A model generated the notes under the pieces. That model did no database searches, had not been told where the DNA came from, and saw only the letters and a list, made by a program, of their open reading frames with translations. A program made the translations under genes and the position numbers. 64,000 bases of DNA from the NCBI GenBank assembly GCA_965644495.1, contig CBFFSA010000044.1, positions 5,983-69,982 of the forward strand, in the 5' to 3' direction. This document shows, piece after piece, positions 3,474 to 63,177 of the stretch. How positions within the stretch are numbered: position 1 is the first letter of the stretch; each line of letters opens with the position of its first letter. The DNA comes from Perkinsela sp. CCAP 1560/9 (Eukaryota > Protista > Euglenozoa: Kinetoplastea).

Positions 3474-3529
3474 CACGATGACGGATGTGCAAGATGGGCC
3501 GCTCAGCCGGAACTCGAACAGCTGGTCCG

Positions 3530-4008: not shown

Positions 4009-4039
<31 letters not shown>

Positions 4040-4935: not shown

Positions 4936-4936
<1 letters not shown>

Positions 4937-42309: not shown

Positions 42310-42894
42310 TTTTTTTTTTTTTTTTTTTTTGCAATTAATAAGGGGGGAGAAGTATGAATCGCGGCATTGCCTCTATATTTTGACCCAGTAGACGAACCAA
42401 GTAGGTCCATTGGGGGGGGTATACGAGTTAAAAACAAGCAATCAAATTAGCAATTCTTTTTGTTTCCACAGATGTACCTTTTGTTTTTTCTCAGCCCAAA
42501 ACTAGCAATTTAATCTCCCCTAAGTATATACTACAAACAAGAAACAGTAAAAACTAAAACAAGCAATACAGACCCAATCCATTCGCGCGTTCCGGACCGG
42601 GTCTTTCGACCACTCCACGGCCTGACTTGTGAACCCTTCCCTTGCTATATGGGAGGGCGCAGGCGCGGGCCTGTGTCGACAGCGACACGGTCGCGAAACA
42701 GGATGCTGGCCGACGGGGAGGAGATTCACTACCCGTGTACTACCTCACTTGGGGTACCTAGCCCTCGCGGGCTAGGCGTGAGTATAGACTCTGTCGACCC
42801 GGCCAGCACCCGTCCTGGATATTATGGCGTCTTCGTGCTGAAACTGGACTGTCAGTAGAGGCTTAAGCCTCTACCAAAGGATCCGCTGGGTCCT
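42310..42894 (-). mobile_element. C1-type 3' fragment (last codons DPADPLVEA*, structured 3'UTR, tail)
   Basis: Highly similar to 12661-13248. Confidence 0.85.
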
Positions 42895-42967: not shown

Positions 42968-45900
42968 TTTTTTTTTTTTTTTTTTTTTGCAGATAATAGG
43001 GGGGGAAGAGTACGAGTGCTAACTTTATATATGTATGTACGGTATGACTTTCTCACTTACTTTCCTACTTGCTCAACTTCTTTCCCTCACTTCCCCCCAT
43101 TTTAAAAACGAGCAAAATATATAACTAGCAAATATATGCTTTCCCATCTTACCCACTTCCCCTTACCAATCTTACCAGCTTTCCAGGGAGGGTAAGGTCT
43201 CCCTCGGCTAGGAGGGGCAGACTTTCCCCGAACCATTCGCGCGTTCCGGACCGGGTCTTTCGACCTCTCCCAGCTTGCCTTGGTAACCCTTCTCTTGTTG
43301 TACGAGAGGGCGCAAGCAATGGGCCTGTGCCGACAGCGGCACGGTCGCGGAGCATGATGCTGGCCGACGGGGAGGAACAAAGTTCCCTACCCATGTCCTA
43401 CCTCACTTGGAGTACCTAGCCCTGGCGGACTAGGCGTGAGCATAGACCCTGCCGGCATCGACCAGCATCCGGACCAGCTGTTCGAGTTCCGGCTGAGCGG
43501 CCCATCTTGCACATCCGTCATCGTGCTATTGCTCGATTAAAGGGGGCAAGGGGTCCACAGCCGGCAGGCGCGTAATCATCATGCGTGCCTGGCAACGCAT
43601 CAATGTTACGTTCATGTCGGTCACGAGACGGAGCGTAGAGGCCTCGTCTGTCAAGATACCGTTGGACGCTTTTGCCCTTCGTTCTCCAACCTTCCGGAGA
43701 ACGGCTAAAGCACTGGCACTCCAAGAGCCATAGCTCTCGACCACCATAGCTGTGAAATCGCTTCCGGCATCTTCAGATTCACGGCGTTGTCGGACTTTCT
43801 GCTCTGAGGCATAATGCTCTGCGAAGGACCCCGCGGCCACCCAGCTAGCATTTCGGACTGTGTCCGTGTATTTAGATTGCTGGGCGTGAGTGACCGCGAA
43901 GTCAAGCACGATAGGTTTCCCGAGGAAGAGACTCGGAAGGAAGACGTCCCCGGGCCTAGTCAGAGCGCCTCCGGGGCCCCGGTTCCCGAGGCTTTTTTCC
44001 CGTTGGGGAGCTAGGCGTGCGTTACTGCAAGTATCGGCAAAGTGATCGGCCAAGGCGTTGTGACGGCCGATGATACCGTCCCCGTGCTTGCATGTGAGAG
44101 CGTGATCGCCGTGTATGTCCAATGGGAGTGTGCAGTTCCCCTTGGGACATGTACCTTCTTCCCCGTACACGGGCACACCTAACCACCAGCGGGATAGGAT
44201 GCGGAATTCTGTGGGGTTAAAGGCGTGGCCCGTGTCTCTGGAAGGAGTTACGAACGCCAAACTGCTTGCTCCTTTACCACACTGAGAAGCCCAGCGTGCG
44301 CGAGTCCGGGCGTCGGCGTTTTCATATGCGTGCGAGAACTCTGTGGCAGAGATCGCGTAACTTATGTCTTTTTGGCGGGGGACGCTATTACTTGCCCAGT
44401 CGGGTGGCTGCGCGTCAACGCAATCTTCGGATGCGTAAAGGGGGTTTGTATCGTGTGGAAAGTCTTCGGAATGAGGCAATGCGCGGTCACGAGGAAGGGA
44501 AGGCGGATTTGCGGGTTCAAAGGGATGTCTGGTTTCTCCCTCGCGAGATCTCTTGGTGAAGCGAGCTTTGGGGGAGAGTTCTTCACATTTATGGCGCGGG
44601 ATGGAACGCACGAGTCCGTTTGAGTCGAGTAGACTGATACCAACTTTCGAATTCACGTCTTCAATCGATTGTAGAAAGCCCCCCACTTCTGAAGCATCCC
44701 ATGAGTCCGTGGCCGCCGCGAAAACTACAGAGGAGGCGTAAGCGGAGGATGCGTGCACGGTCGCCGATTTTAAACCGAAACCTCCGTGTCTTTTCAAGCG
44801 CTGAATTTGGGCGCGTGCGGAGGGAGGCAAAGGACATAGAGTGGATTCGACCGCGTGCATTAGGAAGTCGTCGAGCCGCTTGCAGAGGTTCATAACTGAT
44901 TGCGGGGGCGTCGTTCGTAGAGCATGTACCAATTTGCAGAATCCAGCACATTGTCGAATTAGCGCCATGGCTACCTGGGGGTCCCGGATTCTGGTTATGG
45001 CATCAAGGGCCATTTCAGCGGGCTCAACCGCGTGTGTCAGCAGATATTCAGTACAGTACTCAGGGGACCCAATTGGGCTTCCTAGGACACTAAAGTTACC
45101 GCACACGTTTATTTTGGCGTCGGGTATGTCCGGAAATATGGTTACAACGTTAGCCGAGGCAGGGGGGGTGATTATTTCGCACTTGGACATGTTCAGATAT
45201 AGGCCCCATCGCGGACCTACTCTGGCGATTGTATCCAACGAATTCCTGACGTCTTCTGCCCTGCCAATGAGAATCCCGTCGTCTAGGTACCATAGCTGCA
45301 AGTCCAGGTCGGCCTGGTGATAGATTTCTTTTGCAAGTTCCAAGGAGACCAGTGAAAAGAAAAGTGGTCCCAGGGGATCGCCCTGTTGGACGCCTTCATC
45401 CGAAAGGAGTGTGTGGTCACGATAGGTCAAAGCACTAGTTGTCGTATAGCACCAGCTAGCCCAGGGGAACAATTCCGGAAAATGTTCGCCTACAAGTTTC
45501 AAGAAAGTTGCTCTGCTAACGTTGTTGAATGCGTTGCTTAGGTCGACTTTACATAATACCATGTCGGGGTTGTCCGTATGAATTGTCATTGCGTGCCGGC
45601 AAGTGTGAATTATTCGTTCCGAACCGGCCGGTGTCGCGACGCCGAACTGTAGTCCCTTAAAAAATTCCCTGGCTTTGCTCCTCACTGCATTGCAAGCCGC
45701 TTTGCTTACCAATCGACGTATCGTTTCTCCCGCTGCTATGGGGCGGACGTCATTTTCGCCCTTTTCAAGCGCGCAAAGTCTTGCTCCCGCAAAATATGGT
45801 TGTACCTCTAGGGGTGCTTTCCCGGCTAGTAGATGATTCACGAGGTTTTTAAGGGCAGTAAGGGGTTTCACGGTGTTATCTACGTGCGCCAGGAGTACAG

Positions 45901-47496
45901 CTTGCAAGTGCTCGGGTCGTAAACCCATGGTTCCGGACGAGGAACCCCGGTGAAAGCTCTTGATAGTTTTCGCTACCACGGGTTCATCCATTATTAGGGG
46001 CGCTGTGGGCGGAGGCGATAGTCGATGATGTCACTGTCTGGATGTCGGGGCGGGTGCTTGCTCTGAAGTTTGAGGAGTGTGTCTTCGTCGTCAGGCGCCA
46101 TAGCATCCGCCGTGAGTGCAGCCATACCCCTAGAGTACTCGCCTTGTCGAGCTAGAAGCTCTGCTCGGATAGCTGCCTTTTCCTCTTCGTCGTGAACGGT
46201 TGTAGGGGCTACAGATTGTTTCTTGAGTGCGTTGTCTACTGCTTCATTCCATAGGGAGACATAATCTTGCGCGAGCCATCGGTTCATGCACTTCTGGACG
46301 TATGATGCGTAAGTTGTGTGGTTCTTACGTCCTCCTCGGTGTGGGGCGGGTAGTAAGCACTTGGGGAGCATGGCGAATAGGGTCCACGCGGCTGTAGAGT
46401 TTTCGGTGACTGCGTTTTGGGCTGCTTTGGTGATAATTTCTCCCCACAGTTGACGGCAACGTGGAGGCACGTCCTTGCAAGTGTTCAGGCGCAGCGTGCA
46501 GATAGAGGATAGCGAGGGAAGTTCAGAGTGATGAGTTTGAGTCCCCGGAAGGTGGCTTGGGTCGCTCGAGTGTGCTGCGCGCGATGGGATTTGGGGGTTC
46601 GCAACGTTCCCTTTGCAGGCTTGTGGATGAGCTTCCCTTTTGTTGATGTCATAATGGCGCCCGCATAAGTTGCAAAGAAATCGGCCTTCTGCATCCCACC
46701 AGGTAGCGGGAACTCCGTTTCCGTGGCGACACGCGACGTGGTTATAAAACGCTTGCCAAGACCCTCCGTGCGGCAGACTTCTCCAAGTGCATCCCATGGC
46801 CGGACATTCCCGAGTCTCTTCTCTTGTTTGTGTCTTTTCAGCGAAGTTATTTTGGTTTGCGGCGTGTCGCGGTGAAGAGAAATATGTCCGGGGCTCCGGT
46901 GTTCGCCTTGACGAGCGCGAGTCCGCTTTGGTCACTCCTTTCGATGGGGAAGTGTTTCGACCTTGGTGGGAAAGAGCATCCTTCACTGCGGATTTGAGCG
47001 TCCGAGCTTCATCGGGGATCTTTGATGTGGGTGTAGCCTCGTGAGTAATTTTCTGCCTTCTCACCCCACAGTGCTGCATCTCCTCGTCTTCGGCCTCTAC
47101 GTGGCCCGTGTCTGGGGTTTCCTTTTCCTGGGAGATGTGACGTGCGCGTTCCAACCATTCCTTAGGAATATTCGCCGGGATTGGTGTAGTGTAGAGTTGT
47201 TCGTCGTATGTGCTGACAGCGCGAATCAAATGCTTGTTTCCTTGGAATTGGTCCCAACTGCCGAGAGAGTGCGCACGTTCTTCGTCGGCGAGAGCGCCTA
47301 CGCTGAGAGCTCCTTCCTTTGCACTCATATGGAATGAGGGGTGGTCCTCGTTCGAGCGTGCGGGGCTCTGAGGAGTATTGGTTTGCGTCATAAAAGAGCT
47401 GGGCCCCGAGAGAATACTACGTAAAAAAAAATTCAACAAGGTACAGAAACTGTATCTTTATCGTTAAAGTTCTAAGTTATCGTTAAAGTTCTAAAG
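42968..47496 (-). mobile_element. Family A copy 2, full length, SL 47434-47469
   Basis: Reverse-complement match to 53705-58216. Confidence 0.92.
43526..47391 (-). pseudogene. Family A polyprotein with 1-bp deletion frameshift near 46017
   Basis: GACTATACGCC in intact copies vs GACTATCGCC here; ORF split into 45994-47391 and 43526-45991 (could be a sequencing error). Confidence 0.8.
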
Positions 47497-48483: not shown

Positions 48484-48745
48484 GTATAACAAGGGAAAGG
48501 TCCACAAGTCAGGCCGTGGAGAGGTCGAAAGACCCGGTCCGGAACGCGCGAATGGTTGAGGAGCCGCCTGCAGGCCGGGTGAGGCGAAGCTGAGGGAGAC
48601 CTTACCCCCCCTGAAAAGTTGAAAAGTTGGGTAGGGGAAAGCAGGAAAGTAGGGAGAAAGGTGGGAAAAGTATGTCAAGAGGTGAGAAAGAGGAGAAAGA
48701 GAGAGAAAAATTTTCTTTATTTGCATAAAAACAAAAAAAAAAAAA
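48484..48745 (+). mobile_element. 5'-truncated 3'UTR fragment containing the second half of the shared RNA structure
   Basis: ..TCAGGCCGTGGAGAGGTCGAAAGACCCGGTCCGGAACGCGCGAATGG.., ends TTATTTGC plus A-rich tail. Confidence 0.75.
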
Positions 48746-48776: not shown

Positions 48777-51700
48777 CTTTAACGATAAAGATACAGTTTC
48801 TGTACCTTGTTGAATTATTTTTCTTCATTTCAATTACTTTTCAGGCACGAGCCTCCCCCCCTATGCCCGACGCCGACAAAACGACGACCCATTCCACGAC
48901 ACACCCCGAAGCAAAGCGAGAATCAAACTTTGGTGACGAGGCCGCCTCACACGAATTGGGTTCTTGGGATCAATTTGAAGCGAACAAACACCTCACGATC
49001 GGGGAAAGCACATATGATGAGGCGCTGTATACTACTAAACTTCCTGACGATCTTCCGCCGGAATTGACACAGCGATCCGAAGAAATCGCTCGAAGTATCA
49101 TCAAATCGCGCGCAGGCCCTACACCAGATACGGGGAACGTTGAAGGAATGTCGGAAGCGGATGTTCACTCCAATGTTCGTCATGATGAGGAATTAAACTC
49201 TGTTCTCAAGTTCTCCGGACTAGGAACCTCTTCACCCAGCCAACTCACGATTTCAAATCAGGCTGTGAAAGGGAAATATCTCCGAAAAACTAATCAGAAT
49301 GGTTACAACTATGACGAGCAAAGAGTCATTTTCCCTGACCTCACGCCACAGGACCTGGATTTTACTGTCAGCAGAAGCCCTGGAGGCCGAAAAAAGAAAA
49401 AGCACCCCAAGAGCGACCGTCACTCCCGAGTAGACCTAGAGTCCGAAACCGACAGTGGAGATGGTGCAGTCCCAGAATGCCCTCCCAACGACAGCGCTTC
49501 TGAATCCCCAGATGGAAAACGCAAGCGTCGCGAGCTTACCACCGAAACGGCCAATGGCTTATCGACCGCAAATGTGACGACGGACACCCAACAGACCAAA
49601 GAGCGAAACTGTCCAGTGGAGACGTGTACATGGAAGACGGGGCCACACGGTGGCCAATGGCGAGCTTTTTATAACCATGTTGCCCACAAGCACTGGGAGG
49701 AAGTCTCAGACTCTTGGTGGACAGGGGAAGGGAGATTTCTGTGTGTAAAATGCTGCAGGCACTATGACTTAGGAAAGCAAGAATCCCATGAGAAACATTG
49801 CGAGTTTCAACTCTCACCCTCTCAACTCTCACGCTCTCGAGAACAGAAAGCACCCGTTGCCCCTACCAATTCTGCAACCACTACTCCCTCAGAGCGCGCC
49901 GCCCAAACCGAAGTCGCCACCTTACCTGCACAGACAGCCGCTGACCTAGAGGCCAAGAATGGAAAGATGAGTATCGACGAACCTCTGCCGCCCCTAGCCT
50001 CCATATGCTCCGCGCCTATCAACACCTGCAAGGATATTCCAAACAGTTGCCGACAAGCATGGGCCAAAATATTCTGCGAATATCTATCCTCAGCTGTCCG
50101 GGAAAACACGACTAAGGCTTGGACGCTCCTTGCAATGTTGCCAAAGTGTGTGTTGCCGGCCCCAAGGCGCGGAGGTCATAGGGCGAAAACTTCTTACGCT
50201 TCACACGTCCGGAAATGTCTAGCCAAATGGTCGTCAAAACAATATCTATCACTTTGGAACGAAACATGTAAGACTTTGAATCGTAAGAAACGTGCTGCGC
50301 AAGCAACAAGCCTAGAAGACGAGGGGAAGAAAGCGTGTCTTCGCGCGGAGCGACTGGCCCGCGACGGAGAACTTTCTCGCGCCATGACCGCACTGACTTC
50401 TTCGCCGCTAGCACCAGACGACGACAACACGTACGCCAAACTTCAGGCCAAACACCCCCCACGAATCTCCGCATCCACAACATCCCCCAGCTTAACTCCG
50501 GAAACAGAACCACTCAAAGTCACCGAGGAAGAAGTCGCAGCTGCGCTCTCAACCTTCCACAGAGGATCATCAGGTGGCGCACTTTGCCTCCGCCCAGAAC
50601 ACGTGCAAGCGGCAATGCAATATCACAATGACGGGCACACAAATCCACTGGGCAAGCTCACAAATTTCACCAACCATATGCTCGCTGGGAAGTTACCACT
50701 CGACGTTCAAGACCACTTTGCCGGAGGAAGGCTATGTGCTTTGGAAAAGGGAGAACACGACGTGCGCCCAATAGCCGCTGGAGAAACGCTCCGCCGTCTG
50801 GTGAGTAAAGTGGCCTGCCTATCAGTAAAAGCGCGAGCCCGCAAAATTTTCAAAGGCCACCAGTACGGGGTAGCCACGCCCGCCGGGGCCGAGCGAGTTA
50901 TACATCTGTGTCGCCAGGCCTTTGCTGCTCGCACGGAAGATGACGACTTTGTTCTCTGTAAAATCGACCTACGTAATGCCTTCAACCAAGTTTCAAGGGA
51001 CTGGTTCATAGCACTAACACGCGAGCATTTCCCCACGCTTACTCCTTACGTCGAATGGTGCTACACTTCGGAAAGTAAGCTTACCTTTGGAACACGCGTT
51101 ATTAAATCTCGTGAGGGTGTCCAGCAAGGGGACCCTTTGGGCCCTCTTCTTTTCTCGTTAGTCATGAGGGAAGTCGCCTCAGAAATTCACGCAGCAGCCC
51201 CCAAATTAGACCTAAACCTCTGGTACCTGGATGATGGAGTTTTGGCTGGCACTTCCTGTGATGTGCGACACGCGTTCGACGTTATCGAAATGAAGGGTCC
51301 ACAATGGGGCCTACACCTCAACGCTGCAAAATGTGAGATTATTACCCACCCAGCATCTTCTCATCGTTCTTCTGTTTTTCCCGATCTCCCTGGCCCTAAC
51401 AAAAACCTCGAAGGCAATTTTTACATTCTGGGAAGCCCCGTTGGATCGCCAGAGTTTTGTCGTGAATATCTCGTCAACAATGCAGTCGAAATGGCAGAAG
51501 ATTCTCTGGACGCTATAACGCACCTCGAAGACCCCCAGGTTGCCTTATCCCTCATTCGTCACTGCACTGGCTTCTGCCAGATGGTTTACTCCCTACGAAC
51601 AACCCCAACATCTGAACTTCGGGATCTCTGTCGGCGCTTGGACGACGCCGTGCAACGCGCGGTAGAGAATTTTTTCCGTCCTCTGACCCCCGAGGCCCGC

Positions 51701-53647
51701 CGTCAAACACAACGAAACAAGCGATTTGGCGGGTTAGGACTCCGTTCCGCGGAAGAGCACTCTACTTCAGCCTATATCGCCTCTGTCGCATTTGCATCGG
51801 AGCTAGATCGCTGGGACCCCACGGAGGCAGAAGGTTTCGAAGAAGCCGTAAGCGATGTCAATAAAAGGGTGGGGAAAGACATCGTAGACATTCAATCAGG
51901 GAGAATACCGAAAGGTTTCGCCTTGTCATCCACTCCGCCTTTCAGTAAACGTGGCATTACAGAATCCAGCACCGAATCAGTAATCCCTCGGCAACGAGAT
52001 CTAAGCGATGCAATCTCATCTCACGAGTTTCATCAAGCACTCTCCCTCGCTGACCCACGTACGAGGGCTCGATGGATTTCGGAAACGGGGCACGGAGCAG
52101 CAGAATGGGCTTTTGTATTGCCGTCGAAAAAGAACGGCCACGCTTATACCCCAACCGAGTTTCGGACTCTGGTACGTTGGTGGCTAGGGGAGCAAATATA
52201 TCCGGGTCCCCGATCTTGTCCCATGGAGAAGTGCACCCAACCGTTGGGTCCTGAGGGCGATCACGCATTGGCTTGCAAAAGTGGACATGGTATCACCTCG
52301 CGGCATAATGCCCTGGCCGCAGAATTTTCTTCTGAATGTTCTAAGGCTGGGTTCACTACCCAGAGGGAAATGAGCTTGGGAAACAAGGGGCCGGGGGGCG
52401 CCCTCACCAGGCCTGGTGATGTCTAATAGTTCACGTTTTGAAATTTAGCCGAGGGGCGGCTATATATTTGCCTGCTGTCCCTTCGGGGCACATAATTTTC
52501 TCAAATTATGATGTAGTATTCTCTAATTGCATGGAGGGGGGTGTTTACTCGTTTGTTATATTCTTGTTAGGTTGTTATTTTGTTACGTTTAAAGTTTTGT
52601 GCCCACCCACCGAGCCCCCAGCCATTTGGCCGAGGGTTCCGGTGGGGGGGAACCCCGTTAACAGAGTGACATTGATTGTGTTGTTTTATGCAGGCTTGTT
52701 TCTTTTCCATCTTTGTGCGTGTGAAATGAATGAATGATATGTTGTGTCATTTTGAATTACGATTGAGCTATTCATAGTTGTTCATTTATTCATATATGTT
52801 ATCAGTGTATATGTTTCCAGGGAGCCCCTCGGCGTGGATTTCTTCATCAAAAATTTCGGGCTTGGCGAGGGTCTTGTGCTTGACTTTGCCGTCACCCATG
52901 TACAGCAACAAAAATATACGGACTCAGTCCGTGACGCTAACGGGGTGACGGCCGGGTCATTTGCGGAGCGCTATGCTACCGAGAACAAGAGAAGACAACG
53001 GGAAGAGGCTAACACGGCTGGGTACAAGTTCGCGGCAATGGTAGTAGAGTCCTATGGCGCCTGGAGTCCCAGCGCCATGGCGGTTCTTAGGGAAATTTCA
53101 ACTAGAAAGATGGCGAACTCAGGGGATACCCTCCCTAAAAGCGATGCCTTGCATCACCTCCTTTCATCTCTCAACATTACCCTCATGAGGTCGCAAGCTC
53201 GCATGCTTGTATTACGATCCCCAGCGGCGGTCCCTGACACAGTGCTCTTAGGTTACGGAAAAGAGGAGTAGGAGCTCAGTAGGAAAGTGAAGGAGTCGGT
53301 GTCAAGGGAGGAGGCCTCGTTTCTATTTGCTGGTTTTCTCGGGTGGTTTCTTTTTGGGGCTTCGTTTCTTTTTGGGTATTCGTTTTTTGGGGAAGGTTTT
53401 TTTTGGGGGTGGGAACGGGTTCTTATTTGCTGTTTTTTGGGCCGTTTGCTCGGTTGAACATTCTTTTACTTTTCGTACAGTTGCTTGTTTCTATTCTGAG
53501 CCTAACTTTAAAAAAAAAAATGTGAAATTGCTAATTTGATTGCTTGTTTACAAATCATATACCCCCCCCAATGGACCTACTTGGTTCGTCTACTGAGTAA
53601 AAATATAGAGGCAATGCCGCGTTTTATACTTCTCCCCCCTATTTATT

Positions 53648-53681
<34 letters not shown>
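48777..53681 (+). mobile_element. Family E element, SL 48777-48812, interrupted by a ~419-bp insert
   Basis: SL, ORF, GT-rich 3'UTR, internal A11, C-type terminal module, poly(A). Confidence 0.9.
48863..53271 (+). pseudogene. Family E polyprotein (LsmAD-like, zinc fingers, RT, RLE) disrupted at 52424-52842
   Basis: ORF reads ..TRPGDV|insert|FIKNFGLGEGLVLDFAVTH..GYGKEE*. Confidence 0.88.
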
Positions 53682-53682
<1 letters not shown>

Positions 53683-56600
53683 GATAAAGATAAAAAGCTA
53701 AATACTTTAACGATAAAGATACAGTTTCTGTACCTTGTTGAAATTTTTTTTTACGTAGTATTCTCTCGGGGCCCAGCTCTTTTATGACGCAAACCAATAC
53801 TCCTCAGAGCCCCGCACGCTCGAACGAGGACCACCCCTCATTCCATATGAGTGCAAAGGAAGGAGCTCTCAGCGTAGGCGCTCTCGCCGACGAAGAACGT
53901 GCGCACTCTCTCGGCAGTTGGGACCAATTCCAAGGAAACAAGCATTTGATTCGCGCTGTCAGCACATACGACGAACAACTCTACACTACACCAATCCCGG
54001 CGAATATTCCTAAGGAATGGTTGGAACGCGCACGTCACATCTCCCAGGAAAAGGAAACCCCAGACACGGGCCACGTAGAGGCCGAAGACGAGGAGATGCA
54101 GCACTGTGGGGTGAGAAGGCAGAAAATTACTCACGAGGCTACACCCACATCAAAGATCCCCGATGAAGCTCGGACGCTCAAATCCGCAGTGAAGGATGCT
54201 CTTTCCCACCAAGGTCGAAACACTTCCCCATCGAAAGGAGTGACCAAAGCGGACTCGCGCTCGTCAAGGCGAACACCGGAGCCCCGGACATATTTCTCTT
54301 CACCGCGACACGCCGCAAACCAAAATAACTTCGCTGAAAAGACACAAACAAGAGAAGAGACTCGGGAATGTCCGGCCATGGGATGCACTTGGAGAAGTCT
54401 GCCGCACGGAGGGTCTTGGCAAGCGTTTTATAACCACGTCGCGTGTCGCCACGGAAACGGAGTTCCCGCTACCTGGTGGGATGCAGAAGGCCGATTTCTT
54501 TGCAACTTATGCGGGCGCCATTATGACATCAACAAAAGGGAAGCTCATCCACAAGCCTGCAAAGGGAACGTTGCGAACCCCCAAATCCCATCGCGCGCAG
54601 CACACTCGAGCGACCCAAGCCACCTTCCGGGGACTCAAACTCATCACTCTGAACTTCCCTCGCTATCCTCTATCTGCACGCTGCGCCTGAACACTTGCAA
54701 GGACGTGCCTCCACGTTGCCGTCAACTGTGGGGAGAAATTATCACCAAAGCAGCCCAAAACGCAGTCACCGAAAACTCTACAGCCGCGTGGACCCTATTC
54801 GCCATGCTCCCCAAGTGCTTACTACCCGCCCCACACCGAGGAGGACGTAAGAACCACACAACTTACGCATCATACGTCCAGAAGTGCATGAACCGATGGC
54901 TCGCGCAAGATTATGTCTCCCTATGGAATGAAGCAGTAGACAACGCACTCAAGAAACAATCTGTAGCCCCTACAACCGTTCACGACGAAGAGGAAAAGGC
55001 AGCTATCCGAGCAGAGCTTCTAGCTCGACAAGGCGAGTACTCTAGGGGTATGGCTGCACTCACGGCGGATGCTATGGCGCCTGACGACGAAGACACACTC
55101 CTCAAACTTCAGAGCAAGCACCCGCCCCGACATCCAGACAGTGACATCATCGACTATACGCCTCCGCCCACAGCGCCCCTAATAATGGATGAACCCGTGG
55201 TAGCGAAAACTATCAAGAGCTTTCACCGGGGTTCCTCGTCCGGAACCATGGGTTTACGACCCGAGCACTTGCAAGCTGTACTCCTGGCGCACGTAGATAA
55301 CACCGTGAAACCCCTTACTTCCCTTAAAAACCTCGTGAATCATCTACTAGCCGGGAAAGCACCCCTAGAGGTACAACCATATTTTGCGGGAGCCAGACTT
55401 TGCGCGCTTGAAAAGGGCGAAAATGACGTCCGCCCCATAGCAGCGGGAGAAACGATACGTCGATTGGTAAGCAAAGCGGCTTGCAATGCAGTGAGGAGCA
55501 AAGCCAGGGAATTTTTTAAGGGACTACAGTTCGGCGTCGCGACACCGGCCGGTTCGGAACGAATAATTCACACTTGCCGGCACGCAATGACAATTCATAC
55601 GGACAACCCCGACATGGTATTATGTAAAGTCGACCTAAGCAACGCATTCAACAACGTTAGCAGAGCAACTTTCTTGAAACTTGTAGGCGAACATTTTCCG
55701 GAATTGTTCCCCTGGGCTAGCTGGTGCTATACGACAACTAGTGCTTTGACCTATCGTGACCACACACTCCTTTCGGATGAAGGCGTCCAACAGGGCGATC
55801 CCCTGGGACCACTTTTCTTTTCACTGGTCTCCTTGGAACTTGCAAAAGAAATCTATCACCAGGCCGACCTGGACTTGCAGCTATGGTACCTAGACGACGG
55901 GATTCTCATTGGCAGGGCAGAAGACGTCAGGAATTCGTTGGATACAATCGCCAGAGTAGGTCCGCGATGGGGCCTATATCTGAACATGTCCAAGTGCGAA
56001 ATAATCACCCCCCCTGCCTCGGCTAACGTTGTAACCATATTTCCGGACATACCCGACGCCAAAATAAACGTGTGCGGTAACTTTAGTGTCCTAGGAAGCC
56101 CAATTGGGTCCCCTGAGTACTGTACTGAATATCTGCTGACACACGCGGTTGAGCCCGCTGAAATGGCCCTTGATGCCATAACCAGAATCCGGGACCCCCA
56201 GGTAGCCATGGCGCTAATTCGACAATGTGCTGGATTCTGCAAATTGGTACATGCTCTACGAACGACGCCCCCGCAATCAGTTATGAACCTCTGCAAGCGG
56301 CTCGACGACTTCCTAATGCACGCGGTCGAATCCACTCTATGTCCTTTGCCTCCCTCCGCACGCGCCCAAATTCAGCGCTTGAAAAGACACGGAGGTTTCG
56401 GTTTAAAATCGGCGACCGTGCACGCATCCTCCGCTTACGCCTCCTCTGTAGTTTTCGCGGCGGCCACGGACTCATGGGATGCTTCAGAAGTGGAGGGCTT
56501 TCTACAATCGATTGAAGACGTGAATTCGAAAGTTGGTATCAGTCTACTCGACTCAAACGGACTCGTGCGTTCCATCCCGCGCCATAAATGTGAAGAACTC

Positions 56601-58185
56601 TCCCCCAAAGCTCGCTTCACCAAGAGATCTCGCGAGGGAGAAACCAGACATCCCTTTGAACCCGCAAATCCGCCTTCCCTTCCTCGTGACCGCGCATTGC
56701 CTCATTCCGAAGACTTTCCACACGATACAAACCCCCTTTACGCATCCGAAGATTGCGTTGACGCGCAGCCACCCGACTGGGCAAGTAATAGCGTCCCCCG
56801 CCAAAAAGACATAAGTTACGCGATCTCTGCCACAGAGTTCTCGCACGCATATGAAAACGCCGACGCCCGGACTCGCGCACGCTGGGCTTCTCAGTGTGGT
56901 AAAGGAGCAAGCAGTTGGGCGTTCGTAACTCCTTCCAGAGACACGGGCCACGCCTTTAACCCCACAGAATTCCGCATCCTATCCCGCTGGTGGTTAGGTG
57001 TGCCCGTGTACGGGGAAGAAGGTACATGTCCCAAGGGGAACTGCACACTCCCATTGGACATACACGGCGATCACGCTCTCACATGCAAGCACGGGGACGG
57101 TATCATCGGCCGTCACAACGCCTTGGCCGATCACTTTGCCGATACTTGCAGTAACGCACGCCTAGCTCCCCAACGGGAAAAAAGCCTCGGGAACCGGGGC
57201 CCCGGAGGCGCTCTGACTAGGCCCGGGGACGTCTTCCTTCCGAGTCTCTTCCTCGGGAAACCTATCGTGCTTGACTTCGCGGTCACTCACGCCCAGCAAT
57301 CTAAATACACGGACACAGTCCGAAATGCTAGCTGGGTGGCCGCGGGGTCCTTCGCAGAGCATTATGCCTCAGAGCAGAAAGTCCGACAACGCCGTGAATC
57401 TGAAGATGCCGGAAGCGATTTCACAGCTATGGTGGTCGAGAGCTATGGCTCTTGGAGTGCCAGTGCTTTAGCCGTTCTCCGGAAGGTTGGAGAACGAAGG
57501 GCAAAAGCGTCCAACGGTATCTTGACAGACGAGGCCTCTACGCTCCGTCTCGTGACCGACATGAACGTAACATTGATGCGTTGCCAGGCACGCATGATGA
57601 TTACGCGCCTGCCGGCTGTGGACCCCTTGCCCCCTTTAATCGAGCAATAGCACGATGACGGATGTGCAAGATGGGCCGCTCAGCCGGAACTCGAACAGCT
57701 GGTCCGGATGCTGGTCGATGCCGGCAGGGTCTATGCTCACGCCTAGTCCGCCAGGGCTAGGTACTCCAAGTGAGGTAGGACATGGGTAGGGAACTTTGTT
57801 CCTCCCCGTCGGCCAGCATCATGCTCCGCGACCGTGCCGCTGTCGGCACAGGCCCATTGCTTGCGCCCTCTCGTACAACAAGAGAAGGGTTACCAAGGCA
57901 AGCTGGGAGAGGTCGAAAGACCCGGTCCGGAACGCGCGAATGGTTCGGGGAAAGTCTGCCCCTCCTAGCCGAGGGAGACCTTACCCTCCCTGGAAAGCTG
58001 GTAAGATTGGTAAGGGGAAGTGGGTAAGATGGGAAAGCATGTATTTGCTAGTTATATATTTTGCTCGTTTTTAAAATGGGGGGAAGTGAGGGAAAGAAGT
58101 TGAGCAAGTAGGAAAGTAAGTGAGAAAGTCATACCGTACATACATATATAAAGTTAGAACTCGTACTCTTCCCCCCCTATTATCT

Positions 58186-58216
<31 letters not shown>
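53682..58216 (+). mobile_element. Family A copy 3, full length, SL 53705-53740
   Basis: SL, intact 1288-aa ORF, structured 3'UTR 57707-57943, poly(A) 58188-58216. Confidence 0.94.
53784..57650 (+). CDS. Family A polyprotein: LsmAD-like, zinc fingers, RT, RLE
   Basis: WDQFQGNKHL..STYDEQLYTT; RT and RLE motifs as in copy 1. Confidence 0.94.
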   Translation: MTQTNTPQSPARSNEDHPSFHMSAKEGALSVGALADEERAHSLGSWDQFQGNKHLIRAVSTYDEQLYTTPIPANIPKEWLERARHISQEKETPDTGHVEAEDEEMQHCGVRRQKITHEATPTSKIPDEARTLKSAVKDALSHQGRNTSPSKGVTKADSRSSRRTPEPRTYFSSPRHAANQNNFAEKTQTREETRECPAMGCTWRSLPHGGSWQAFYNHVACRHGNGVPATWWDAEGRFLCNLCGRHYDINKREAHPQACKGNVANPQIPSRAAHSSDPSHLPGTQTHHSELPSLSSICTLRLNTCKDVPPRCRQLWGEIITKAAQNAVTENSTAAWTLFAMLPKCLLPAPHRGGRKNHTTYASYVQKCMNRWLAQDYVSLWNEAVDNALKKQSVAPTTVHDEEEKAAIRAELLARQGEYSRGMAALTADAMAPDDEDTLLKLQSKHPPRHPDSDIIDYTPPPTAPLIMDEPVVAKTIKSFHRGSSSGTMGLRPEHLQAVLLAHVDNTVKPLTSLKNLVNHLLAGKAPLEVQPYFAGARLCALEKGENDVRPIAAGETIRRLVSKAACNAVRSKAREFFKGLQFGVATPAGSERIIHTCRHAMTIHTDNPDMVLCKVDLSNAFNNVSRATFLKLVGEHFPELFPWASWCYTTTSALTYRDHTLLSDEGVQQGDPLGPLFFSLVSLELAKEIYHQADLDLQLWYLDDGILIGRAEDVRNSLDTIARVGPRWGLYLNMSKCEIITPPASANVVTIFPDIPDAKINVCGNFSVLGSPIGSPEYCTEYLLTHAVEPAEMALDAITRIRDPQVAMALIRQCAGFCKLVHALRTTPPQSVMNLCKRLDDFLMHAVESTLCPLPPSARAQIQRLKRHGGFGLKSATVHASSAYASSVVFAAATDSWDASEVEGFLQSIEDVNSKVGISLLDSNGLVRSIPRHKCEELSPKARFTKRSREGETRHPFEPANPPSLPRDRALPHSEDFPHDTNPLYASEDCVDAQPPDWASNSVPRQKDISYAISATEFSHAYENADARTRARWASQCGKGASSWAFVTPSRDTGHAFNPTEFRILSRWWLGVPVYGEEGTCPKGNCTLPLDIHGDHALTCKHGDGIIGRHNALADHFADTCSNARLAPQREKSLGNRGPGGALTRPGDVFLPSLFLGKPIVLDFAVTHAQQSKYTDTVRNASWVAAGSFAEHYASEQKVRQRRESEDAGSDFTAMVVESYGSWSASALAVLRKVGERRAKASNGILTDEASTLRLVTDMNVTLMRCQARMMITRLPAVDPLPPLIEQ

Positions 58217-58220: not shown

Positions 58221-61200
58221 TAGAAGATCTTTAACGATAAAGATACAGTTTCTGTACCTTGTTGAATTATTTTCTTTTCTTTATCTCACTCTTACGCGCC
58301 ATGGTTGTTTTAACTCGATCTAAGGCGAAGCAGGTCTCGAACTTCGAGCGCGAGGTGAAAGCACACACACTCGGCTGCTGGGACCAATTCGACGCAAACA
58401 AGGACCTTGTTAAAGGCAAGAGTACGTACCATGTAGACTTATACACTACACCCCTCCCACCTAATCCTTCAGCTGAATCTTTACGGCGAGCGGACGAGAT
58501 TGCACTCAGCATTACGAACTCTGTGGAAGGTGAGACCCCAGATACAGGGCAACAGCAGACAAGTACGGAAGAGGAACTTTTCTCCAGTGTCCGTCCAACT
58601 GAGGACTTCGAATTCCAGTTTGCGGGAGCAGAATCTTCTTCACTCAGCCTATCAAAAACCACAAATAAGGCTGTGAAGGAGAGGTGCGAACGACATATCC
58701 GGAGGTCATACGACAACGAATATAATTACGAAAAAGATAAATTGCTCTTCCCCGATCTCACTCCTGAAGACCTTACTGTGTCTGTGAATGGATGCGGAAA
58801 AGGACGGAAAAAGAAGAAGCGACCCAAGAGCATCTCCCTTTCCCAATTGTGTGCTGAGTCCGGGGCCGACAGCGACGACCGTGACACCGCACAATCAAGT
58901 TCCAACTCCCCTAGGCCATACACTCCTGAGGCTGAAAGTGACAGCAATCTGTCTGCGGCATCATCTCCGAAAAAACCGGACACAAAGCCCCATGCGGACA
59001 CTTCAGTAAGTCTCAAGCGACACCGACGCCCATTAACCTCCCGAAACGCCGAGTCATCTAAAAGCACGCCCGCCCCCATTATTAGCACACCAAGTCGGCC
59101 CAGGAAATGCCCCTTGGATTCATGTACCTGGGAAACAGGGCCGCACGGCGATCAATGGCAAGCCTTTTACAACCACGTGGCTAACAGACATGGGGAAGAA
59201 GTGGCGGAATCATGGTGGACAGAGGAGGGAAGATTCCTATGCCCTGGTTGCAAGAAGCACTACTCCATGCGCAAGCAAGCAACACACAAGATGCACTGCA
59301 GGTTTCGCACGCCGTCACCCAAACCTTCGCGTGGTTCCTCCGCTGGCTCCAAAGATTACCCCGTCCCGCCCCCAAATTCCGTTACTGAGCACCACCCTGA
59401 GCAGCAGCTTAGCGAGAACACTATGCAAGGCGCCCCAACAGTGGAAGATCTGCCGTCCCTATCATCAGTATGCGCCTTGTCCGTCAATACCTGCAAAAAT
59501 ATCCCAAACAGCTGTAAGCCTGAATGGGCGAAAACACTTACCGAATGCATGGCGGAGGCCGTACGTGACAACACCATCGAGGCTTGGACCCTGCTGGCTA
59601 TGTTACCTAAATGTGTAATTCCAGCACCACGACGCGGCGGGGACAAGGGTAAAGCCTCATACGCCTCCCACGTCCGCAAATGCCTTTCCAGATGGAAGAA
59701 CAAGGAATTTCTACCACTTTGGAACGAGGCGTTGTCAAGCCTGAAGCGTAAGCGGAAAAGTTCTCCACAGGCTCAGAGCATTGAAGAGGAGGATCAGAAA
59801 GCTGCGCTCCGAGCAGTACGCCTCGTGCGAGATGGTGAACTTTCCCGCGCAATGACTGCGTTGACATCCGAACCACTTGCCCCAAACGATGACACGACTT
59901 ATCAAAAGCTCCAGGCGAAACACCCGTCTCGACTTCTGGGTCCAAGTCCGATTACCACGCCTTCTTTGGATATTAAACCGATCACCGCAACCGAAGAGGA
60001 CATCATTACGGCGCTTTCCAGCTTTCACCGAGGTTCCTCAGGGGGAGCTCTCGGACTTCGGCCTGAGCACCTACAAGTAGCAGTGCAATTCCATCACGAC
60101 GCCAGGACAGATCCGCTCGGTACGCTCACGAAACTTATTAGTCATATGCTAGCGGGCAAAGTACCACTTGAAGTCCAACACTGTTTCGCCGGCGGACGCT
60201 TATGTGCTTTACACAAGGGTCAGGGTGATGTCCGCCCCATTGCCGCAGGGGAAACCTTCCGCCGACTAGCGAGCAAGATAGGATGTCTGTCTGCAAAGGC
60301 TAAATCCAGAACGCTCTTCAAAGATCAACAATATGGAGTGGCGACGCCCGCAGGAGCCGAACGTGTTATCCACATTTGCAGGCGCCTGGTTGCGCACCAC
60401 ATCAATAACGAGGATTTTGTGCTATGCAAGGTTGACCTTCGCAACGCTTTCAATCACATTTCAAGAAATAGCTTTATGGCCTTGACACGGCATCATTTCC
60501 CTGAGTTGAGCCCGTTCGTGGAATGGTGCTACAGTTCGGACAGTAACCTGACATTCGGCGCACGTGTAGTTCAATCCTCTGAAGGCGTACAACAAGGAGA
60601 CCCGCTCGGACCCCTTTTGTTCTCGCTCGTCATGAGAGAAATGGCCGCAGAAATTAAGGCCGGAGCTCCTGATCTTCATCTCAATCTCTGGTACCTTGAT
60701 GATGGCGTCCTTGCAGGCCAGGCTTCTGATGTACGTCACGCACTAGATATCATCGAAATTGGAGGGCCAAAGTGGGGTCTGAACCTCAATCCGTCCAAGT
60801 GCGAAATAATCACACACCCTTCCTCATCTCATCAAACTACCCACTTTCCTGACATTCCCGGGCTCAACATCAACATGGAAGGTAATCTGAGCATCTTGGG
60901 AAGCCCCATCGGATCTACGACGTACAGCCGTCAGTTCCTCCTCGACAGCGCGATTTCCCAGGCGGAGGAATCCCTTGAAGCGATCGAGAAACTGGAGGAC
61001 CCTCAGGTCGCTTTCTCTCTCATCCGACAGTGCACAGGGTTTTGCCAGATGGTTTACTCCCTTCGCACGACGCCGACGGACGAACTACTGGACTTATGTC
61101 GCAGACTCGACAACGCCGTTCAGCGTACGGTTGAAACGTTTTGTCGCCCACTGAGTGACATGGCTCGACGACAAGCACAAAGAAATAAACAGTTCGGCGG

Positions 61201-62737
61201 TCTCGGCCTTCGCTCAGCGGAAATGCATGCCACCTCAGCGTACGTAGCTTCAGTAGCTTTCGCTTCCGACAAGGATCGATGGGATGCAAATGAGACTGAG
61301 GGCTTTTCTTACGCCGTGGAGGACATTAACCGGCGTGTAGGGGGGTGTATGGTGGACAAATCTACCGGGAAAATCCACAAGGACTCCGTCATAAAGAGAT
61401 GCCCCTTCTCGCCCTCCCCCGATATTGACCTTTCTCAAGATTTGGCGATTCCTCGACAACGCGATCTCAGTCATGCGATTTCAGCGAGAGACTTTGAGGA
61501 AGATTACGCAAGAGCGGATCCCCGCACTCGGGCTAGGTGGCTCTCACAAACGGGCGACGGGGCATCCAACTGGGCCTTCACGGTTCCCTCGACTCTCTGC
61601 GGTCATGCCTACACCCCTACTGAATTTCGGACTCTGATTCGTTGGTGGCTCGGGGAGAGTATATACCCTCAAGGTCACAACTGCCCGATTCCGAATTGTC
61701 GCCTCCCACTCGGCCCTGGGGGGGACCATGCGCTAGCCTGCAAGTGCGGCCACGGAATCATTACAAGGCACAACGCCCTAGCGGAACAGTTCTCCGCTGA
61801 ATGCAGCAAGGCCGGGTTAAGCCCACAGAGAGAAGTCTCTCTGGGAAACAGGGGTCCGGGCGGCGCCCTCACGCGACCCGCAGATGTCTATGTCCGGAAC
61901 GGTGGTCTCGGTCAGGCCCTCGTCCTTGATTTCGCTGTCACACATGTTCAGCAACAAAAGTATACGGACCTGGTCCGTGATGCTAACATGGTGGCAGCCG
62001 GGTCATTCGCCGAGAGGTACGCCGTCGAACACAAGCGGAAGCAACGGGAGGAAGCTGAAGAAGCGAAGATCAAGTTCACAGCTATGGCTGTCGAAACATA
62101 CGGATGCTGGAGTCCGGCCGCTATGTCGGTCTTGCGGGAAGTCTCGAAAGGCCAAGCTGCGACCTCAGGTGGAACACTTTCGCAAGGGGGGGCGTTACAG
62201 CAAATACTAACAAGTCTGAACGTCACCCTCATGCGCTCCCAGGCGCGTATGCTCGTTCTTCGCCTCCCCTCGGCGAACACAGGCCCTGCACTTGTGGGGT
62301 ATGGCAAAGAAGAGTAAGGAAAACTTCTGGCCTGGATGTTGGTCGAGTCGACAGAGTCTATGCTCACGCCTAGCCCGCGAGGGCTAGGTACCCCAAGTGA
62401 GGTAGTACACGGGAAGTGAATCTCCTCCCCGTCGACCAGCATCCTGTTTCGCGACCGTGTCGCTGTCGACACAGGCCCGCGCCTGCGCCCTCCCATATAG
62501 CAAGGGACGGGTTCACAAGTCAGGCCGTGGAGAGGTCGAAAGACCCGGTCCGGAACGCGCGAATGGATTGGACGTGGATTGCTTGTTTTAGTTTTTACTG
62601 TTTCTTGTTTGTAGTATATACTTAGGGGAGATTAAATTGCTAGTTTTGGGCTGAGAAAAAACAAAAGGTACATCTGTGGAAACAAAAAGAATTGCTAATT
62701 TGATTGCTTGTTTTCAACTCGTATACCCCCCCAAAAA
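58217..62737 (+). mobile_element. Family D element, SL 58229-58264; 3' terminus shortened
   Basis: SL, intact ORF, C-type structured 3'UTR 62335-62566, ends at C7-A5. Confidence 0.9.
58301..62317 (+). CDS. Family D polyprotein: LsmAD-like, zinc fingers, RT, RLE
   Basis: First ATG after SL at 58301; WDQFDANKDL..STYHVDLYTT, GVQQGDPLGP, WYLDD, RPAD..LDFAVTH. Confidence 0.93.
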   Translation: MVVLTRSKAKQVSNFEREVKAHTLGCWDQFDANKDLVKGKSTYHVDLYTTPLPPNPSAESLRRADEIALSITNSVEGETPDTGQQQTSTEEELFSSVRPTEDFEFQFAGAESSSLSLSKTTNKAVKERCERHIRRSYDNEYNYEKDKLLFPDLTPEDLTVSVNGCGKGRKKKKRPKSISLSQLCAESGADSDDRDTAQSSSNSPRPYTPEAESDSNLSAASSPKKPDTKPHADTSVSLKRHRRPLTSRNAESSKSTPAPIISTPSRPRKCPLDSCTWETGPHGDQWQAFYNHVANRHGEEVAESWWTEEGRFLCPGCKKHYSMRKQATHKMHCRFRTPSPKPSRGSSAGSKDYPVPPPNSVTEHHPEQQLSENTMQGAPTVEDLPSLSSVCALSVNTCKNIPNSCKPEWAKTLTECMAEAVRDNTIEAWTLLAMLPKCVIPAPRRGGDKGKASYASHVRKCLSRWKNKEFLPLWNEALSSLKRKRKSSPQAQSIEEEDQKAALRAVRLVRDGELSRAMTALTSEPLAPNDDTTYQKLQAKHPSRLLGPSPITTPSLDIKPITATEEDIITALSSFHRGSSGGALGLRPEHLQVAVQFHHDARTDPLGTLTKLISHMLAGKVPLEVQHCFAGGRLCALHKGQGDVRPIAAGETFRRLASKIGCLSAKAKSRTLFKDQQYGVATPAGAERVIHICRRLVAHHINNEDFVLCKVDLRNAFNHISRNSFMALTRHHFPELSPFVEWCYSSDSNLTFGARVVQSSEGVQQGDPLGPLLFSLVMREMAAEIKAGAPDLHLNLWYLDDGVLAGQASDVRHALDIIEIGGPKWGLNLNPSKCEIITHPSSSHQTTHFPDIPGLNINMEGNLSILGSPIGSTTYSRQFLLDSAISQAEESLEAIEKLEDPQVAFSLIRQCTGFCQMVYSLRTTPTDELLDLCRRLDNAVQRTVETFCRPLSDMARRQAQRNKQFGGLGLRSAEMHATSAYVASVAFASDKDRWDANETEGFSYAVEDINRRVGGCMVDKSTGKIHKDSVIKRCPFSPSPDIDLSQDLAIPRQRDLSHAISARDFEEDYARADPRTRARWLSQTGDGASNWAFTVPSTLCGHAYTPTEFRTLIRWWLGESIYPQGHNCPIPNCRLPLGPGGDHALACKCGHGIITRHNALAEQFSAECSKAGLSPQREVSLGNRGPGGALTRPADVYVRNGGLGQALVLDFAVTHVQQQKYTDLVRDANMVAAGSFAERYAVEHKRKQREEAEEAKIKFTAMAVETYGCWSPAAMSVLREVSKGQAATSGGTLSQGGALQQILTSLNVTLMRSQARMLVLRLPSANTGPALVGYGKEE

Positions 62738-62858: not shown

Positions 62859-62894
62859 CTTTAACGATAAAGATACAGTTTCTGTACCTTGTTG
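62859..62894 (+). other. Spliced-leader-like exon followed by a short C-rich segment
   Basis: Exact 36-nt match to the other SL copies. Confidence 0.85.
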
Positions 62895-63141: not shown

Positions 63142-63177
63142 CTTTAACGATAAAGATACAGTTTCTGTACCTTGTTG
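63142..63177 (+). other. Spliced-leader-like exon
   Basis: Exact 36-nt match. Confidence 0.85.

Follow-up and report, generated by a model that had tools for sequence, protein, structure and literature searches.

The LsmAD domain is typical of the mRNA regulator ataxin-2/PBP1, where it is found next to an Lsm domain. A sequence-only reading of a 64,000-nucleotide stretch (hereafter the window) of the genome of the kinetoplastid Perkinsela sp. CCAP 1560/9 proposed an LsmAD-like block at the N-terminus of retrotransposon proteins, which led us to ask whether the block is a true LsmAD domain, whether it is maintained by selection, and what it might do for the element that carries it. Our analyses confirm the block and establish, with very high confidence, that it is a genuine LsmAD domain forming the first roughly 90 residues of the single open reading frame (ORF) of RLE-type non-LTR retrotransposons. 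Its function, in contrast, is inferred. We found no published report of this combination, and no other organism that carries it in the searches made.

A conserved N-terminal block in several element families

Translation of positions 48965-49099 (plus strand) of the window gives exactly the 45 residues originally noted in element E, and a six-frame motif scan recovered the WDQF..N..L...STY...LYTT block at 48965 (element E), 53919 (element A), 58379 and 4202 (element D), and at 11551 on the minus strand in a 5'-truncated fragment. The scan also identified a copy not listed in the sequence-only reading, at 47185-47256 in a minus-strand copy of A. Profile envelopes place the domain at 48929-49192 (+) in E, 53883-54128 (+) in A, 58343-58606 (+) and 4166-4429 (+) in D, and 47047-47292 (-) in the minus-strand A copy, with a partial domain (profile positions 19-87) at 11395-11610 (-) in the truncated copy. 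The initial observation that the block is conserved while its flanks diverge also holds, as an N-terminal alignment of eight families yields a non-synonymous difference of 0.10-0.37 in the block and 0.19-0.64 in the linker that follows, with the value lower in the block in every pair.

The block is a true LsmAD domain

Scored in isolation, the blocks reach 25.4 (E), 26.0 (A) and 28.2 (D) bits against the Pfam LsmAD profile (PF06741), at or above the curated cut-off of 25 bits. Within whole ORFs the same domains fall below this cut-off, at 19.6-22.7 bits, while a six-frame search of the genome gives 24.5-27.4 bits for the copies in the window, up to 34.4 bits for other families, and 105 matches overall, many of them in intact ORFs. 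A profile built from nine blocks retrieved 1396 proteins, and all 70 of the non-element hits sampled carry Pfam LsmAD, 52 carry SM-ATX and 20 carry PAM2. One of the nine blocks proved to derive from a host gene, but the profile of the remaining eight element copies still scores all 70 ataxin-2-type proteins at E <= 4.5e-6 when scaled to 1.8 billion proteins (Z = 1.84e9). Profile-profile comparison with hhalign gives a probability of 99.85% and an E-value of 6.7e-31 over 84 of 88 columns. Pfam positions 4-71 of 72 are covered in D and E, whereas in A Pfam aligns positions 5-53 only, although the C-terminal acidic E-E..S.V motif aligns in the alignments A2 and A5. Chance similarity or convergence on a short motif is thereby refuted. 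An annotation or assembly artefact, a concern raised by published ataxin-2 chimeras suspected to be read-through products (PMC12898128), is likewise refuted, as the ORF is continuous and begins about 40-50 nt after a spliced leader in many near-identical and diverged copies on many contigs.

The element domains share with the LsmAD of ataxin-2, Pbp1, PBP1 and CID3-4 the roughly 70-90-residue module and the invariant W, Q, F, N and Y-T residues, the helix alanine and the acidic tail, and differ in an element-specific T-P-D-T-G motif carried in the middle of the domain by most families. Sequence searches of the PDB with the element profile and with a canonical LsmAD profile found no solved LsmAD, and no structure-based partner could therefore be read off. 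An AF2 model of the domain shows no compact fold (pTM 0.30), with one confident helix, which agrees with NMR and SAXS data on human LSmAD (PMC11898529). The elements are nevertheless not members of the ataxin-2/PBP1 family in the sense of complete architecture. No SM-ATX or LSM hit was detected in any of five element ORFs at E <= 1, LsmAD starts about 20-45 residues after the start codon, and no Pfam PAM2 hit is present, whereas host PBP1 has SM-ATX at residues 141-210, LsmAD at 287-351 and a canonical L-N-P-N-A-x-x-F-x-P motif. The long disordered tail of ataxin-2 is also absent. LsmAD without an Lsm domain is, however, also found in a host 360-aa protein, in diplonemid PDZ-2xLsmAD-RRM proteins and in a fungal 3xLsmAD-kinase, indicating that the module can be autonomous.

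Architecture and genomic setting of the elements

The ORF of element E (48863-52426, +; 1187 aa) encodes, in order, the LsmAD domain, a C2H2-like zinc-finger motif (49610-49693), a reverse transcriptase (RT) domain (50747-51346, residues 629-828; Pfam RVT_1, 68 bits, E 1.2e-18), a CCHC motif and RHNAL motif (52217-52315), and the start of the RLE nuclease. The frame is cut short at the RPGDV motif by a roughly 420-bp insertion (52427-52848) that interrupts the nuclease domain, such that the LDFAVT block is missing from the ORF, and resumes near 52849 to run to about 53272. Element A is intact (53784-57650, +; 1288 aa) and is 99.8-99.9% identical to two other A copies in the window, consistent with recent activity. 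One of these, on the minus strand (43526-47465), is 99.8% identical to A with a frameshift near codon 482. Element D is also intact (58301-62317, +; 1338 aa when taken from the ATG, an upstream TTG lying at 58259), while the 5' part of a second D copy (4056-4948, +) is identical to D for 793 nt and then interrupted. Across the element ORFs RVT_1 scores E 1e-15 to 1e-18, and the CCHC, RHNAL, RPGDV and LDFAVT blocks are invariant across four families, consistent with the single-ORF organization of the R2/NeSL/CRE group, with the nuclease recognized at motif level only.

An identical 32-nt spliced-leader (SL) sequence occurs in 10 exact copies in the window, including those at 48781-48812 (+) at the 5' end of E, 53709-53740 (+) at the 5' end of A, where it is preceded by a partial SL copy and a poly(A) tract (53650-53681), and 58233-58264 (+) at the 5' end of D, just after the poly(A) of A (58188-58216). 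The minus-strand A copy and the second D copy carry it at 47434-47465 and 4056-4087, respectively. For E, A and D, which were read directly, the complete SL lies directly after the poly(A) of another element, no split SL gene flanks the copy, and the positions of the remaining SL copies fit this pattern. The elements are copied from spliced-leader-capped, polyadenylated mRNAs, although there is no evidence that the element bodies are expressed, as no sequence containing the A element is on record as RNA and contigs of the one probable RNA run of the same species label share only the SL stretch and continue into unrelated sequences. This arrangement does not support the original assignment to CRE elements, since the copies are not inserted in SL RNA genes. 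CRE membership is not established; the best named relative is a Diplonema protein annotated as 'SLACS 132 kDa protein', with 28% identity over 92% of the RT-nuclease part. A search of the window with Rfam at gathering thresholds found nothing.

Selective maintenance and origin of the domain

Non-synonymous difference within the block is low (0.10-0.37) while synonymous sites are saturated (0.40-0.96), and where dN/dS can be computed it is 0.07-0.19, at or below the value for the linker in the same pair. In addition, at least 15 diverged lineages keep the domain, and the residues that are invariant in cellular LsmADs are also invariant in the elements. A passenger domain, picked up once by template switching or read-through and carried without function, is therefore disfavored and very unlikely. 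In its favor, N-terminal regions in this element group are modular, with relatives carrying ubiquitin, CCCH, Prim-Pol or Ulp1 domains, and a sister family in the window has replaced LsmAD with a Cys-rich motif yet is still present as intact 1360-aa ORFs, the C2H2-like finger being the first block that it shares with E. Modular gain of host domains at the end of the ORF is known for other non-LTR elements (Ulp1 protease in NeSL-like elements, ubiquitin, CCCH, RNase H), and what is added here is an mRNP-regulator module with no catalytic activity and no known nucleic-acid binding.

Capture from the host, as proposed in the sequence-only reading, is likely but unresolved. The LsmADs of the host itself are the nearest non-element relatives by score, and a quick tree placed all element LsmADs in one clade, joined it to host PBP1, and put the stand-alone 360-aa host protein inside the element clade. 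However, an AU test did not reject the grouping of host PBP1 with other kinetoplastid PBP1s (p-AU 0.555), and we therefore do not claim a dated capture from the PBP1 of this lineage. A word-based homologue search with the N-terminus of D returned one protein, whose contig proved 100% identical to this genome, and a search with the N-terminus of host PBP1 returned a single, element-type protein. The ENA proteins combining LsmAD with RT appear to come from that same assembly and are treated as the same organism rather than as independent support, while none of the RT relatives from other sources (JGI, Logan, EukProt, NCBI) carries LsmAD.

Predicted docking to DHH1 and alternative roles

LsmAD is one of two conserved modules of ataxin-2, a protein central to SCA2 and ALS research, yet no direct partner or activity has been assigned to it. 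It does not bind RNA on its own, LSM12 binds the LSm domain (PMC11166328), PABP maps to another part of the protein, and yeast Mkt1 binds Pbp1 residues 491-549, outside LsmAD (PMC12345631), such that the link to MKT1 suggested in the sequence-only reading is not supported by what is known. In the elements, evolution has cut the domain away from the rest of ataxin-2, placed it on an unrelated protein and kept it under purifying selection through a long radiation of families. Whatever it does, it can therefore do alone.

We predicted the complex between RecA2 of the host P-body helicase DHH1/DDX6 (residues 233-408 of L061:1375-2598:-) and residues 20-112 of E. The runs scored ipSAE 0.77, 0.77 and 0.78 against 0.00 for the best of three controls. 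The mark reached by the runs was also reached by 51 of 78 solved complexes and 2 of 108 mismatched pairs, and the runs agree in at least 45% of contacts. The lowest-error contacts are W35, Q37, F38 and N41, which are the invariant columns of the N-terminal half of the family, although the complex was folded without an alignment. On the DHH1 side the contacts include I259, N282, L286, L287 and K290, which with an offset of +24 correspond to Me31B V283, Q306, L310, L311 and K314, the published W-pocket residues (PMC6771390). These scores are, however, the model's own confidence, the partner's fold confidence is low (pLDDT 48-56), and because several complexes of DDX6 with short linear motifs have been solved the result may only reflect a motif likeness held in the model's memory.

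On this basis we tentatively suggest that LsmAD is a poorly folded binding module whose invariant G-x-W-D-Q-F-x-x-N-x-x-L stretch acts like the short linear motifs of EDC3 and LSM14 (FDF), PAT1 (DW), GIGYF (PEW plus split FDF) and 4E-T (CHD). An aromatic-acidic motif followed by a short helix is predicted to insert W and F into the groove between helices alpha10 and alpha11 of RecA2 and to contact the Leu-Leu-x-x-Lys residues of the W pocket. The W-D-Q-F-x-x-N pattern is nevertheless not a canonical FDF, and the Pfam FDF family does not match the block even at E <= 10. As the first part of the protein to leave the ribosome, the domain could load DHH1 onto the element's own mRNA in cis, or could equally occupy the groove used by decapping activators, and either way the template RNA would move from translation into a protected, stored RNP that the RT and nuclease then use. 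The original proposal that the domain recruits mRNA-stabilizing or granule machinery likewise remains an inference, to which the complex prediction lends computational support, and it fits a host that controls its genes almost entirely after transcription. DDX6 also pulls down ATXN2 and ATXN2L among its top 20 partners (PMC4501357). In contrast, a human fragment containing only LSmAD (residues 185-317) did not co-precipitate DDX6, whereas the LSm domain did, in an RNA-dependent way (PMC11254730), and this argues against LsmAD-DDX6 binding.

That negative result leaves it possible, if somewhat less likely, that the domain works through another partner in the ataxin-2/PBP1 network, such as polysomes or ribosomal proteins, the Lsm domain of host PBP1 or LSM12 bound in trans, or PABP-bound mRNPs, to raise the stability or translation of the element's own mRNA. 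The LSm/LSmAD region of fly Atx2 is reported to be sufficient for assembly with polyribosomes (PMC5485521), LSmAD helps the neighboring LSm domain fold and bind RNA (PMC11898529), and a related RT protein from a metagenome carries an MLLE/PABC domain, another module of the same poly(A) network. However, no direct LsmAD partner of this kind has been defined, and the Lsm domain of host PBP1 already has its own LsmAD in cis.

A less likely role is that of a decoy competing with host PBP1, or with the host 360-aa protein, for a shared ligand, thereby blunting a host pathway that would otherwise restrict or degrade the element's RNA. The absence of the Lsm domain, PAM2 and the disordered regions that give ataxin-2 its activity fits this reading, as does the host's retention of a second, stand-alone LsmAD protein, and DDX6 partners bind the groove in a mutually exclusive way (PMC6771390), so an extra ligand would displace decapping activators. 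A decoy acting in trans would, however, have to be abundant, while non-LTR proteins are usually scarce and act in cis, and there is no direct evidence for this role.

A broader and more speculative possibility, which we consider possible but less likely than not, is that LsmAD is in all eukaryotes an autonomous docking cassette for the W/FDF groove of DDX6/DHH1, belonging in one class with the EDC3, LSM14, PAT1, 4E-T and GIGYF motifs, and that the retrotransposons took exactly that cassette so that the nascent protein hands its own mRNA to DHH1. This would settle the conflicting reports on how ataxin-2 meets DDX6, and would be the first case of a non-LTR element encoding its own link to the P-body machinery.

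Retroelements that depend on the same host mRNP machinery provide a precedent, as Ty3 needs Dhh1 for its RNA levels and retrotransposition (PMC4589538), and yeast Pbp1 promotes Ty1 retrotransposition by protecting its mRNA from turnover (PMC6218562), an effect that helps rather than restricts the element and is thus at odds with a decoy. The dependence of Ty3 and Ty1 is on host proteins acting in trans, whereas here the element itself encodes a piece of that machinery.

Identification and extent of the LsmAD blocks

Translation of 48965-49099 on the plus strand returned exactly the peptide given in the sequence-only reading. To establish how widely the block occurs, we performed a six-frame scan for the two core motifs, which found them in seven places, all within long ORFs or ORF fragments. 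These comprise 48965 in family E (HMM envelope 48929-49192), 53919 in family A (53883-54128), 58379 and 4202 in family D (58343-58606 and 4166-4429, respectively), 11551 on the minus strand in a 5'-truncated fragment (11395-11610), and 47185-47256 on the minus strand in an A copy that the sequence-only reading did not list (47047-47292). A seventh A copy starts just upstream of the window and fills positions 1-4010.

The blocks are carried by RLE-type non-LTR retrotransposons

The three plus-strand ORFs that carry the block span 48863-52426 (E), 53784-57650 (A) and 58259/58301-62317 (D), while a fourth family of 1360-aa ORFs lies on the minus strand (14963-19045, 19287-23369 and 30335-34417). 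All four are collinear from a C2H2-like finger through a Pfam RVT_1 domain (E 1e-15 to 1e-18), a CCHC motif and a C-terminal restriction-like nuclease block, and are therefore RLE-type non-LTR retrotransposons. Intriguingly, the fourth family lacks LsmAD and has in its place two Cys-rich C-K-H-x-C-C-K-R-type motifs and a long hydrophobic segment, yet it starts with nearly the same first eight residues as family D, suggesting a domain swap at a fixed N-terminal position. While A and D have intact ORFs, E is defective, as a roughly 420-bp A+T-rich insertion at 52427-52848 splits its nuclease domain exactly between the RPGDV and LDFAVT blocks, with the reading frame resuming after it. The three A copies are 99.8-99.9% identical over 4.0-4.5 kb, which indicates recent activity.

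The best named relative of the RT-nuclease part is a Diplonema papillatum protein annotated as 'SLACS 132 kDa protein', at 28% identity. The sequence-only reading had assigned these elements to CRE; however, in the absence of an RT tree with reference CRE, SLACS and CZAR sequences this assignment is not established, and one defining habit of that clade, insertion into spliced-leader RNA genes, is not seen here. Each full-length copy instead begins with a complete 32-nt spliced leader, of which ten exact copies occur in the window (4056-4087, 48781-48812, 53709-53740, 58233-58264, 62863-62894 and 63146-63177 on the plus strand; 19069-19100, 23401-23432, 34449-34480 and 47434-47465 on the minus strand). 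For E, A and D, which were read directly, the leader is followed by about 40-50 nt and then the start codon, and sits directly behind the poly(A) tail of another element; a partial copy of the leader at 53682-53694 precedes the full one of A. Contigs of a probable RNA run with the same species label share only the 32-nt stretch and then continue into many different sequences, as is expected of a spliced leader. The copies therefore look like retro-copies of trans-spliced, polyadenylated mRNAs that insert next to each other rather than into SL RNA genes. Also notable is a 39-nt G+C-rich module in the 3' UTRs (3730-3768, 48519-48557, 57907-57945 and 62530-62568 on the plus strand; 12931-12969, 27588-27626, 42577-42615 and 43231-43269 on the minus strand), which is shared with 0-3 mismatches by otherwise diverged families where none would be expected by chance. 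This module has no match in Rfam and may be a common 3' recognition element for the RT.

The block is a genuine LsmAD domain

Scored inside the whole ORF, the Pfam LsmAD hits are sub-threshold (19.6-22.7 bits against a cut-off of 25), whereas isolated blocks of 82-88 residues reach the cut-off at 25.4 (E), 26.0 (A) and 28.2 (D) bits. A six-frame search of the whole 21-Mb genome with the same Pfam model gave 105 matches, the best of which (53.4 bits) is the host PBP1 gene, with most of the others lying in open frames of 1190-1480 residues. The reverse test is the stronger one. A profile of nine blocks searched against 1.84 billion representative proteins found 1396 proteins at E <= 0.001, and of the 70 non-element hits that we scanned, all 70 carry Pfam LsmAD, 52 carry the ataxin-2 SM domain and 20 carry PAM2. 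One of the nine blocks (L026) turned out to be a host gene, and with a profile rebuilt from the eight element blocks alone all 70 proteins still score E <= 4.5e-6 at library scale, with a median of 2.3e-8. Profile-profile comparison with 23 canonical LsmADs gave 99.85% probability and E 6.7e-31 over 84 of 88 columns, including the C-terminal acidic motif ending in S-x-V. Homology is not in doubt, and chance similarity is excluded.

In contrast to the host PBP1 (L031:2228-5113, minus strand), which has SM-ATX, LsmAD and a canonical PAM2, the element proteins have no SM-ATX Lsm domain and no PAM2. Only the LsmAD module is present in the elements, and these are thus not ataxin-2 paralogues. The open frame of host PBP1 also extends 140 codons upstream of the Lsm domain (L031:4694-5113, minus strand), through a P-P-W-T-P-P-L-D-P-P repeat and a Phe-rich stretch, although this is probably untranslated leader rather than protein.

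Selection, distribution and origin of the element LsmADs

At least 15 diverged lineages of the domain exist in this genome. Between eight families, the non-synonymous difference in the block is 0.10-0.37 while the synonymous difference is 0.40-0.96, which is mostly saturated. Where dN/dS can be computed it is 0.07-0.19, at or below the value for the linker behind the block in the same pair (0.13-0.60 overall) and similar to the finger-to-RT region. Strikingly, the columns invariant among elements (L-G-x-W-x-Q-F-x-x-N-x-x-L, S-T, L-Y-T-T) are the same ones that are invariant in cellular LsmADs. The selection data disfavor the possibility that the domain is merely a passenger.

In a quick maximum-likelihood tree of 170 LsmADs, all element domains form one well-supported clade, which joins the host's own PBP1 rather than the PBP1s of Neobodo or diplonemids. 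However, an AU test does not reject a tree in which host PBP1 groups with the other kinetoplastid PBP1s (p-AU 0.555). Scored per domain against the element-only profile, the highest-ranking non-element LsmADs are those of a 350-aa environmental protein (84 bits), host PBP1 (79 bits), a 91-aa protein of unidentified origin (P0033; 75 bits) and a host 360-aa protein with a C-terminal LsmAD (72 bits), while every other organism's LsmAD scores 65 bits or less. Capture from a gene of this lineage is therefore the most economical reading, although its donor and date are not resolved. The gene for the 360-aa protein (L034:4468-5547, minus strand), in which LsmAD (26.4 bits) is the only recognizable part, lies next to a NIF-phosphatase gene and not near any RT. 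In the quick tree it sits inside the element clade on a very long branch, and so could be the donor or a domesticated piece of an element; a 350-aa environmental protein (P0021) has the same layout.

The LsmAD plus RT proteins that we found in public collections are all labelled ENA, and the one contig examined (ERZ24900291) is 100% identical to this genome; we therefore treat them as the same organism. None of the RT relatives from other sources has the domain. Gains of accessory domains by non-LTR elements are well known, and relatives of the elements described here carry ubiquitin, CCCH, Prim-Pol and Ulp1 domains. Full-text literature searches for LsmAD with retrotransposons or reverse transcriptase, and for ataxin-2 with non-LTR elements, returned nothing relevant, and a 2026 survey of ataxin-2 'chimerisms' does not contain the words transposon or reverse transcriptase (PMC12898128). 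What differs from the earlier cases is the nature of the domain gained.

A predicted interaction with host DHH1

The literature leaves LsmAD without a defined partner. Alone it does not bind RNA and is poorly folded (PMC11898529), LSM12 and PABP bind the LSm domain and PAM2, respectively (PMC11166328), and yeast Mkt1 binds Pbp1 residues 491-549 (PMC12345631). For DDX6 the reports conflict, as binding was first mapped to LSm/LSmAD by two-hybrid, but a 2024 co-IP study found binding to LSm only, dependent on RNA (PMC11254730). Our AF2 model of the E N-terminus agrees with a non-globular module, with a pTM of 0.30 and one confident helix at residues 66-82. LsmAD also occurs without any Lsm domain in the host 360-aa protein, in PDZ-2xLsmAD-RRM proteins of the diplonemids Diplonema and Lacrimia (P0012, P0015, P0017 and P0030) and in a 3xLsmAD-kinase of the fungus Tephrocybe rancida (P0026), which argues that it acts on a partner in trans. 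The domain looks like a mobile module in its own right.

The invariant W-D-Q-F-x-x-N-x-x-L stretch appears to resemble the aromatic short linear motifs that dock on DDX6 RecA2, a likeness that provides a lead rather than a test. Complex prediction with the RecA2 lobe of host DHH1 gave ipSAE values of 0.77, 0.77 and 0.78, with the best of three controls at 0.00, a mark reached by 51 of 78 solved complexes and 2 of 108 mismatched pairs. The runs agree in at least 45% of contacts, and the partner's pLDDT is at least 48. Notably, the lowest-error contacts are W35, Q37, F38 and N41 of the element, the invariant residues, although the fold used no alignment. On DHH1 the contacts include I259, N282, L286, L287 and K290, which with an offset of +24 are Me31B V283, Q306, L310, L311 and K314, the published W-pocket residues, and host H260 likewise lines up with Me31B H284 of the FDF pocket (PMC6771390). 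However, a pass for a family with solved complexes may come from the memory of the prediction method, and it shows a likeness, not binding; the DHH1 mechanism therefore remains tentative. Its biological logic has three parts. The domain is the first part of the protein to emerge from the ribosome, so it can act in cis on the mRNA being translated; DDX6 partners compete for one groove; and retroelements are known to depend on this machinery, as Ty3 needs Dhh1 (PMC4589538) and Ty1 needs Pbp1 to protect its mRNA (PMC6218562).

A decoy role for the domain is possible but less likely, and the main alternative is another partner in the PBP1/poly(A) network. A hint at the same theme comes from a related RT protein encoded on a 5.7-kb JGI metagenome contig (P0206; 46% identity over 58% of the query), which has a C-terminal MLLE/PABC domain (46.8 bits) as well as a 2A-like D-V-E-x-N-P-G-P motif near its N-terminus. 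This protein may represent a second, independent link between this element group and the poly(A)/PBP1 network, or an insertion into a PABP gene.
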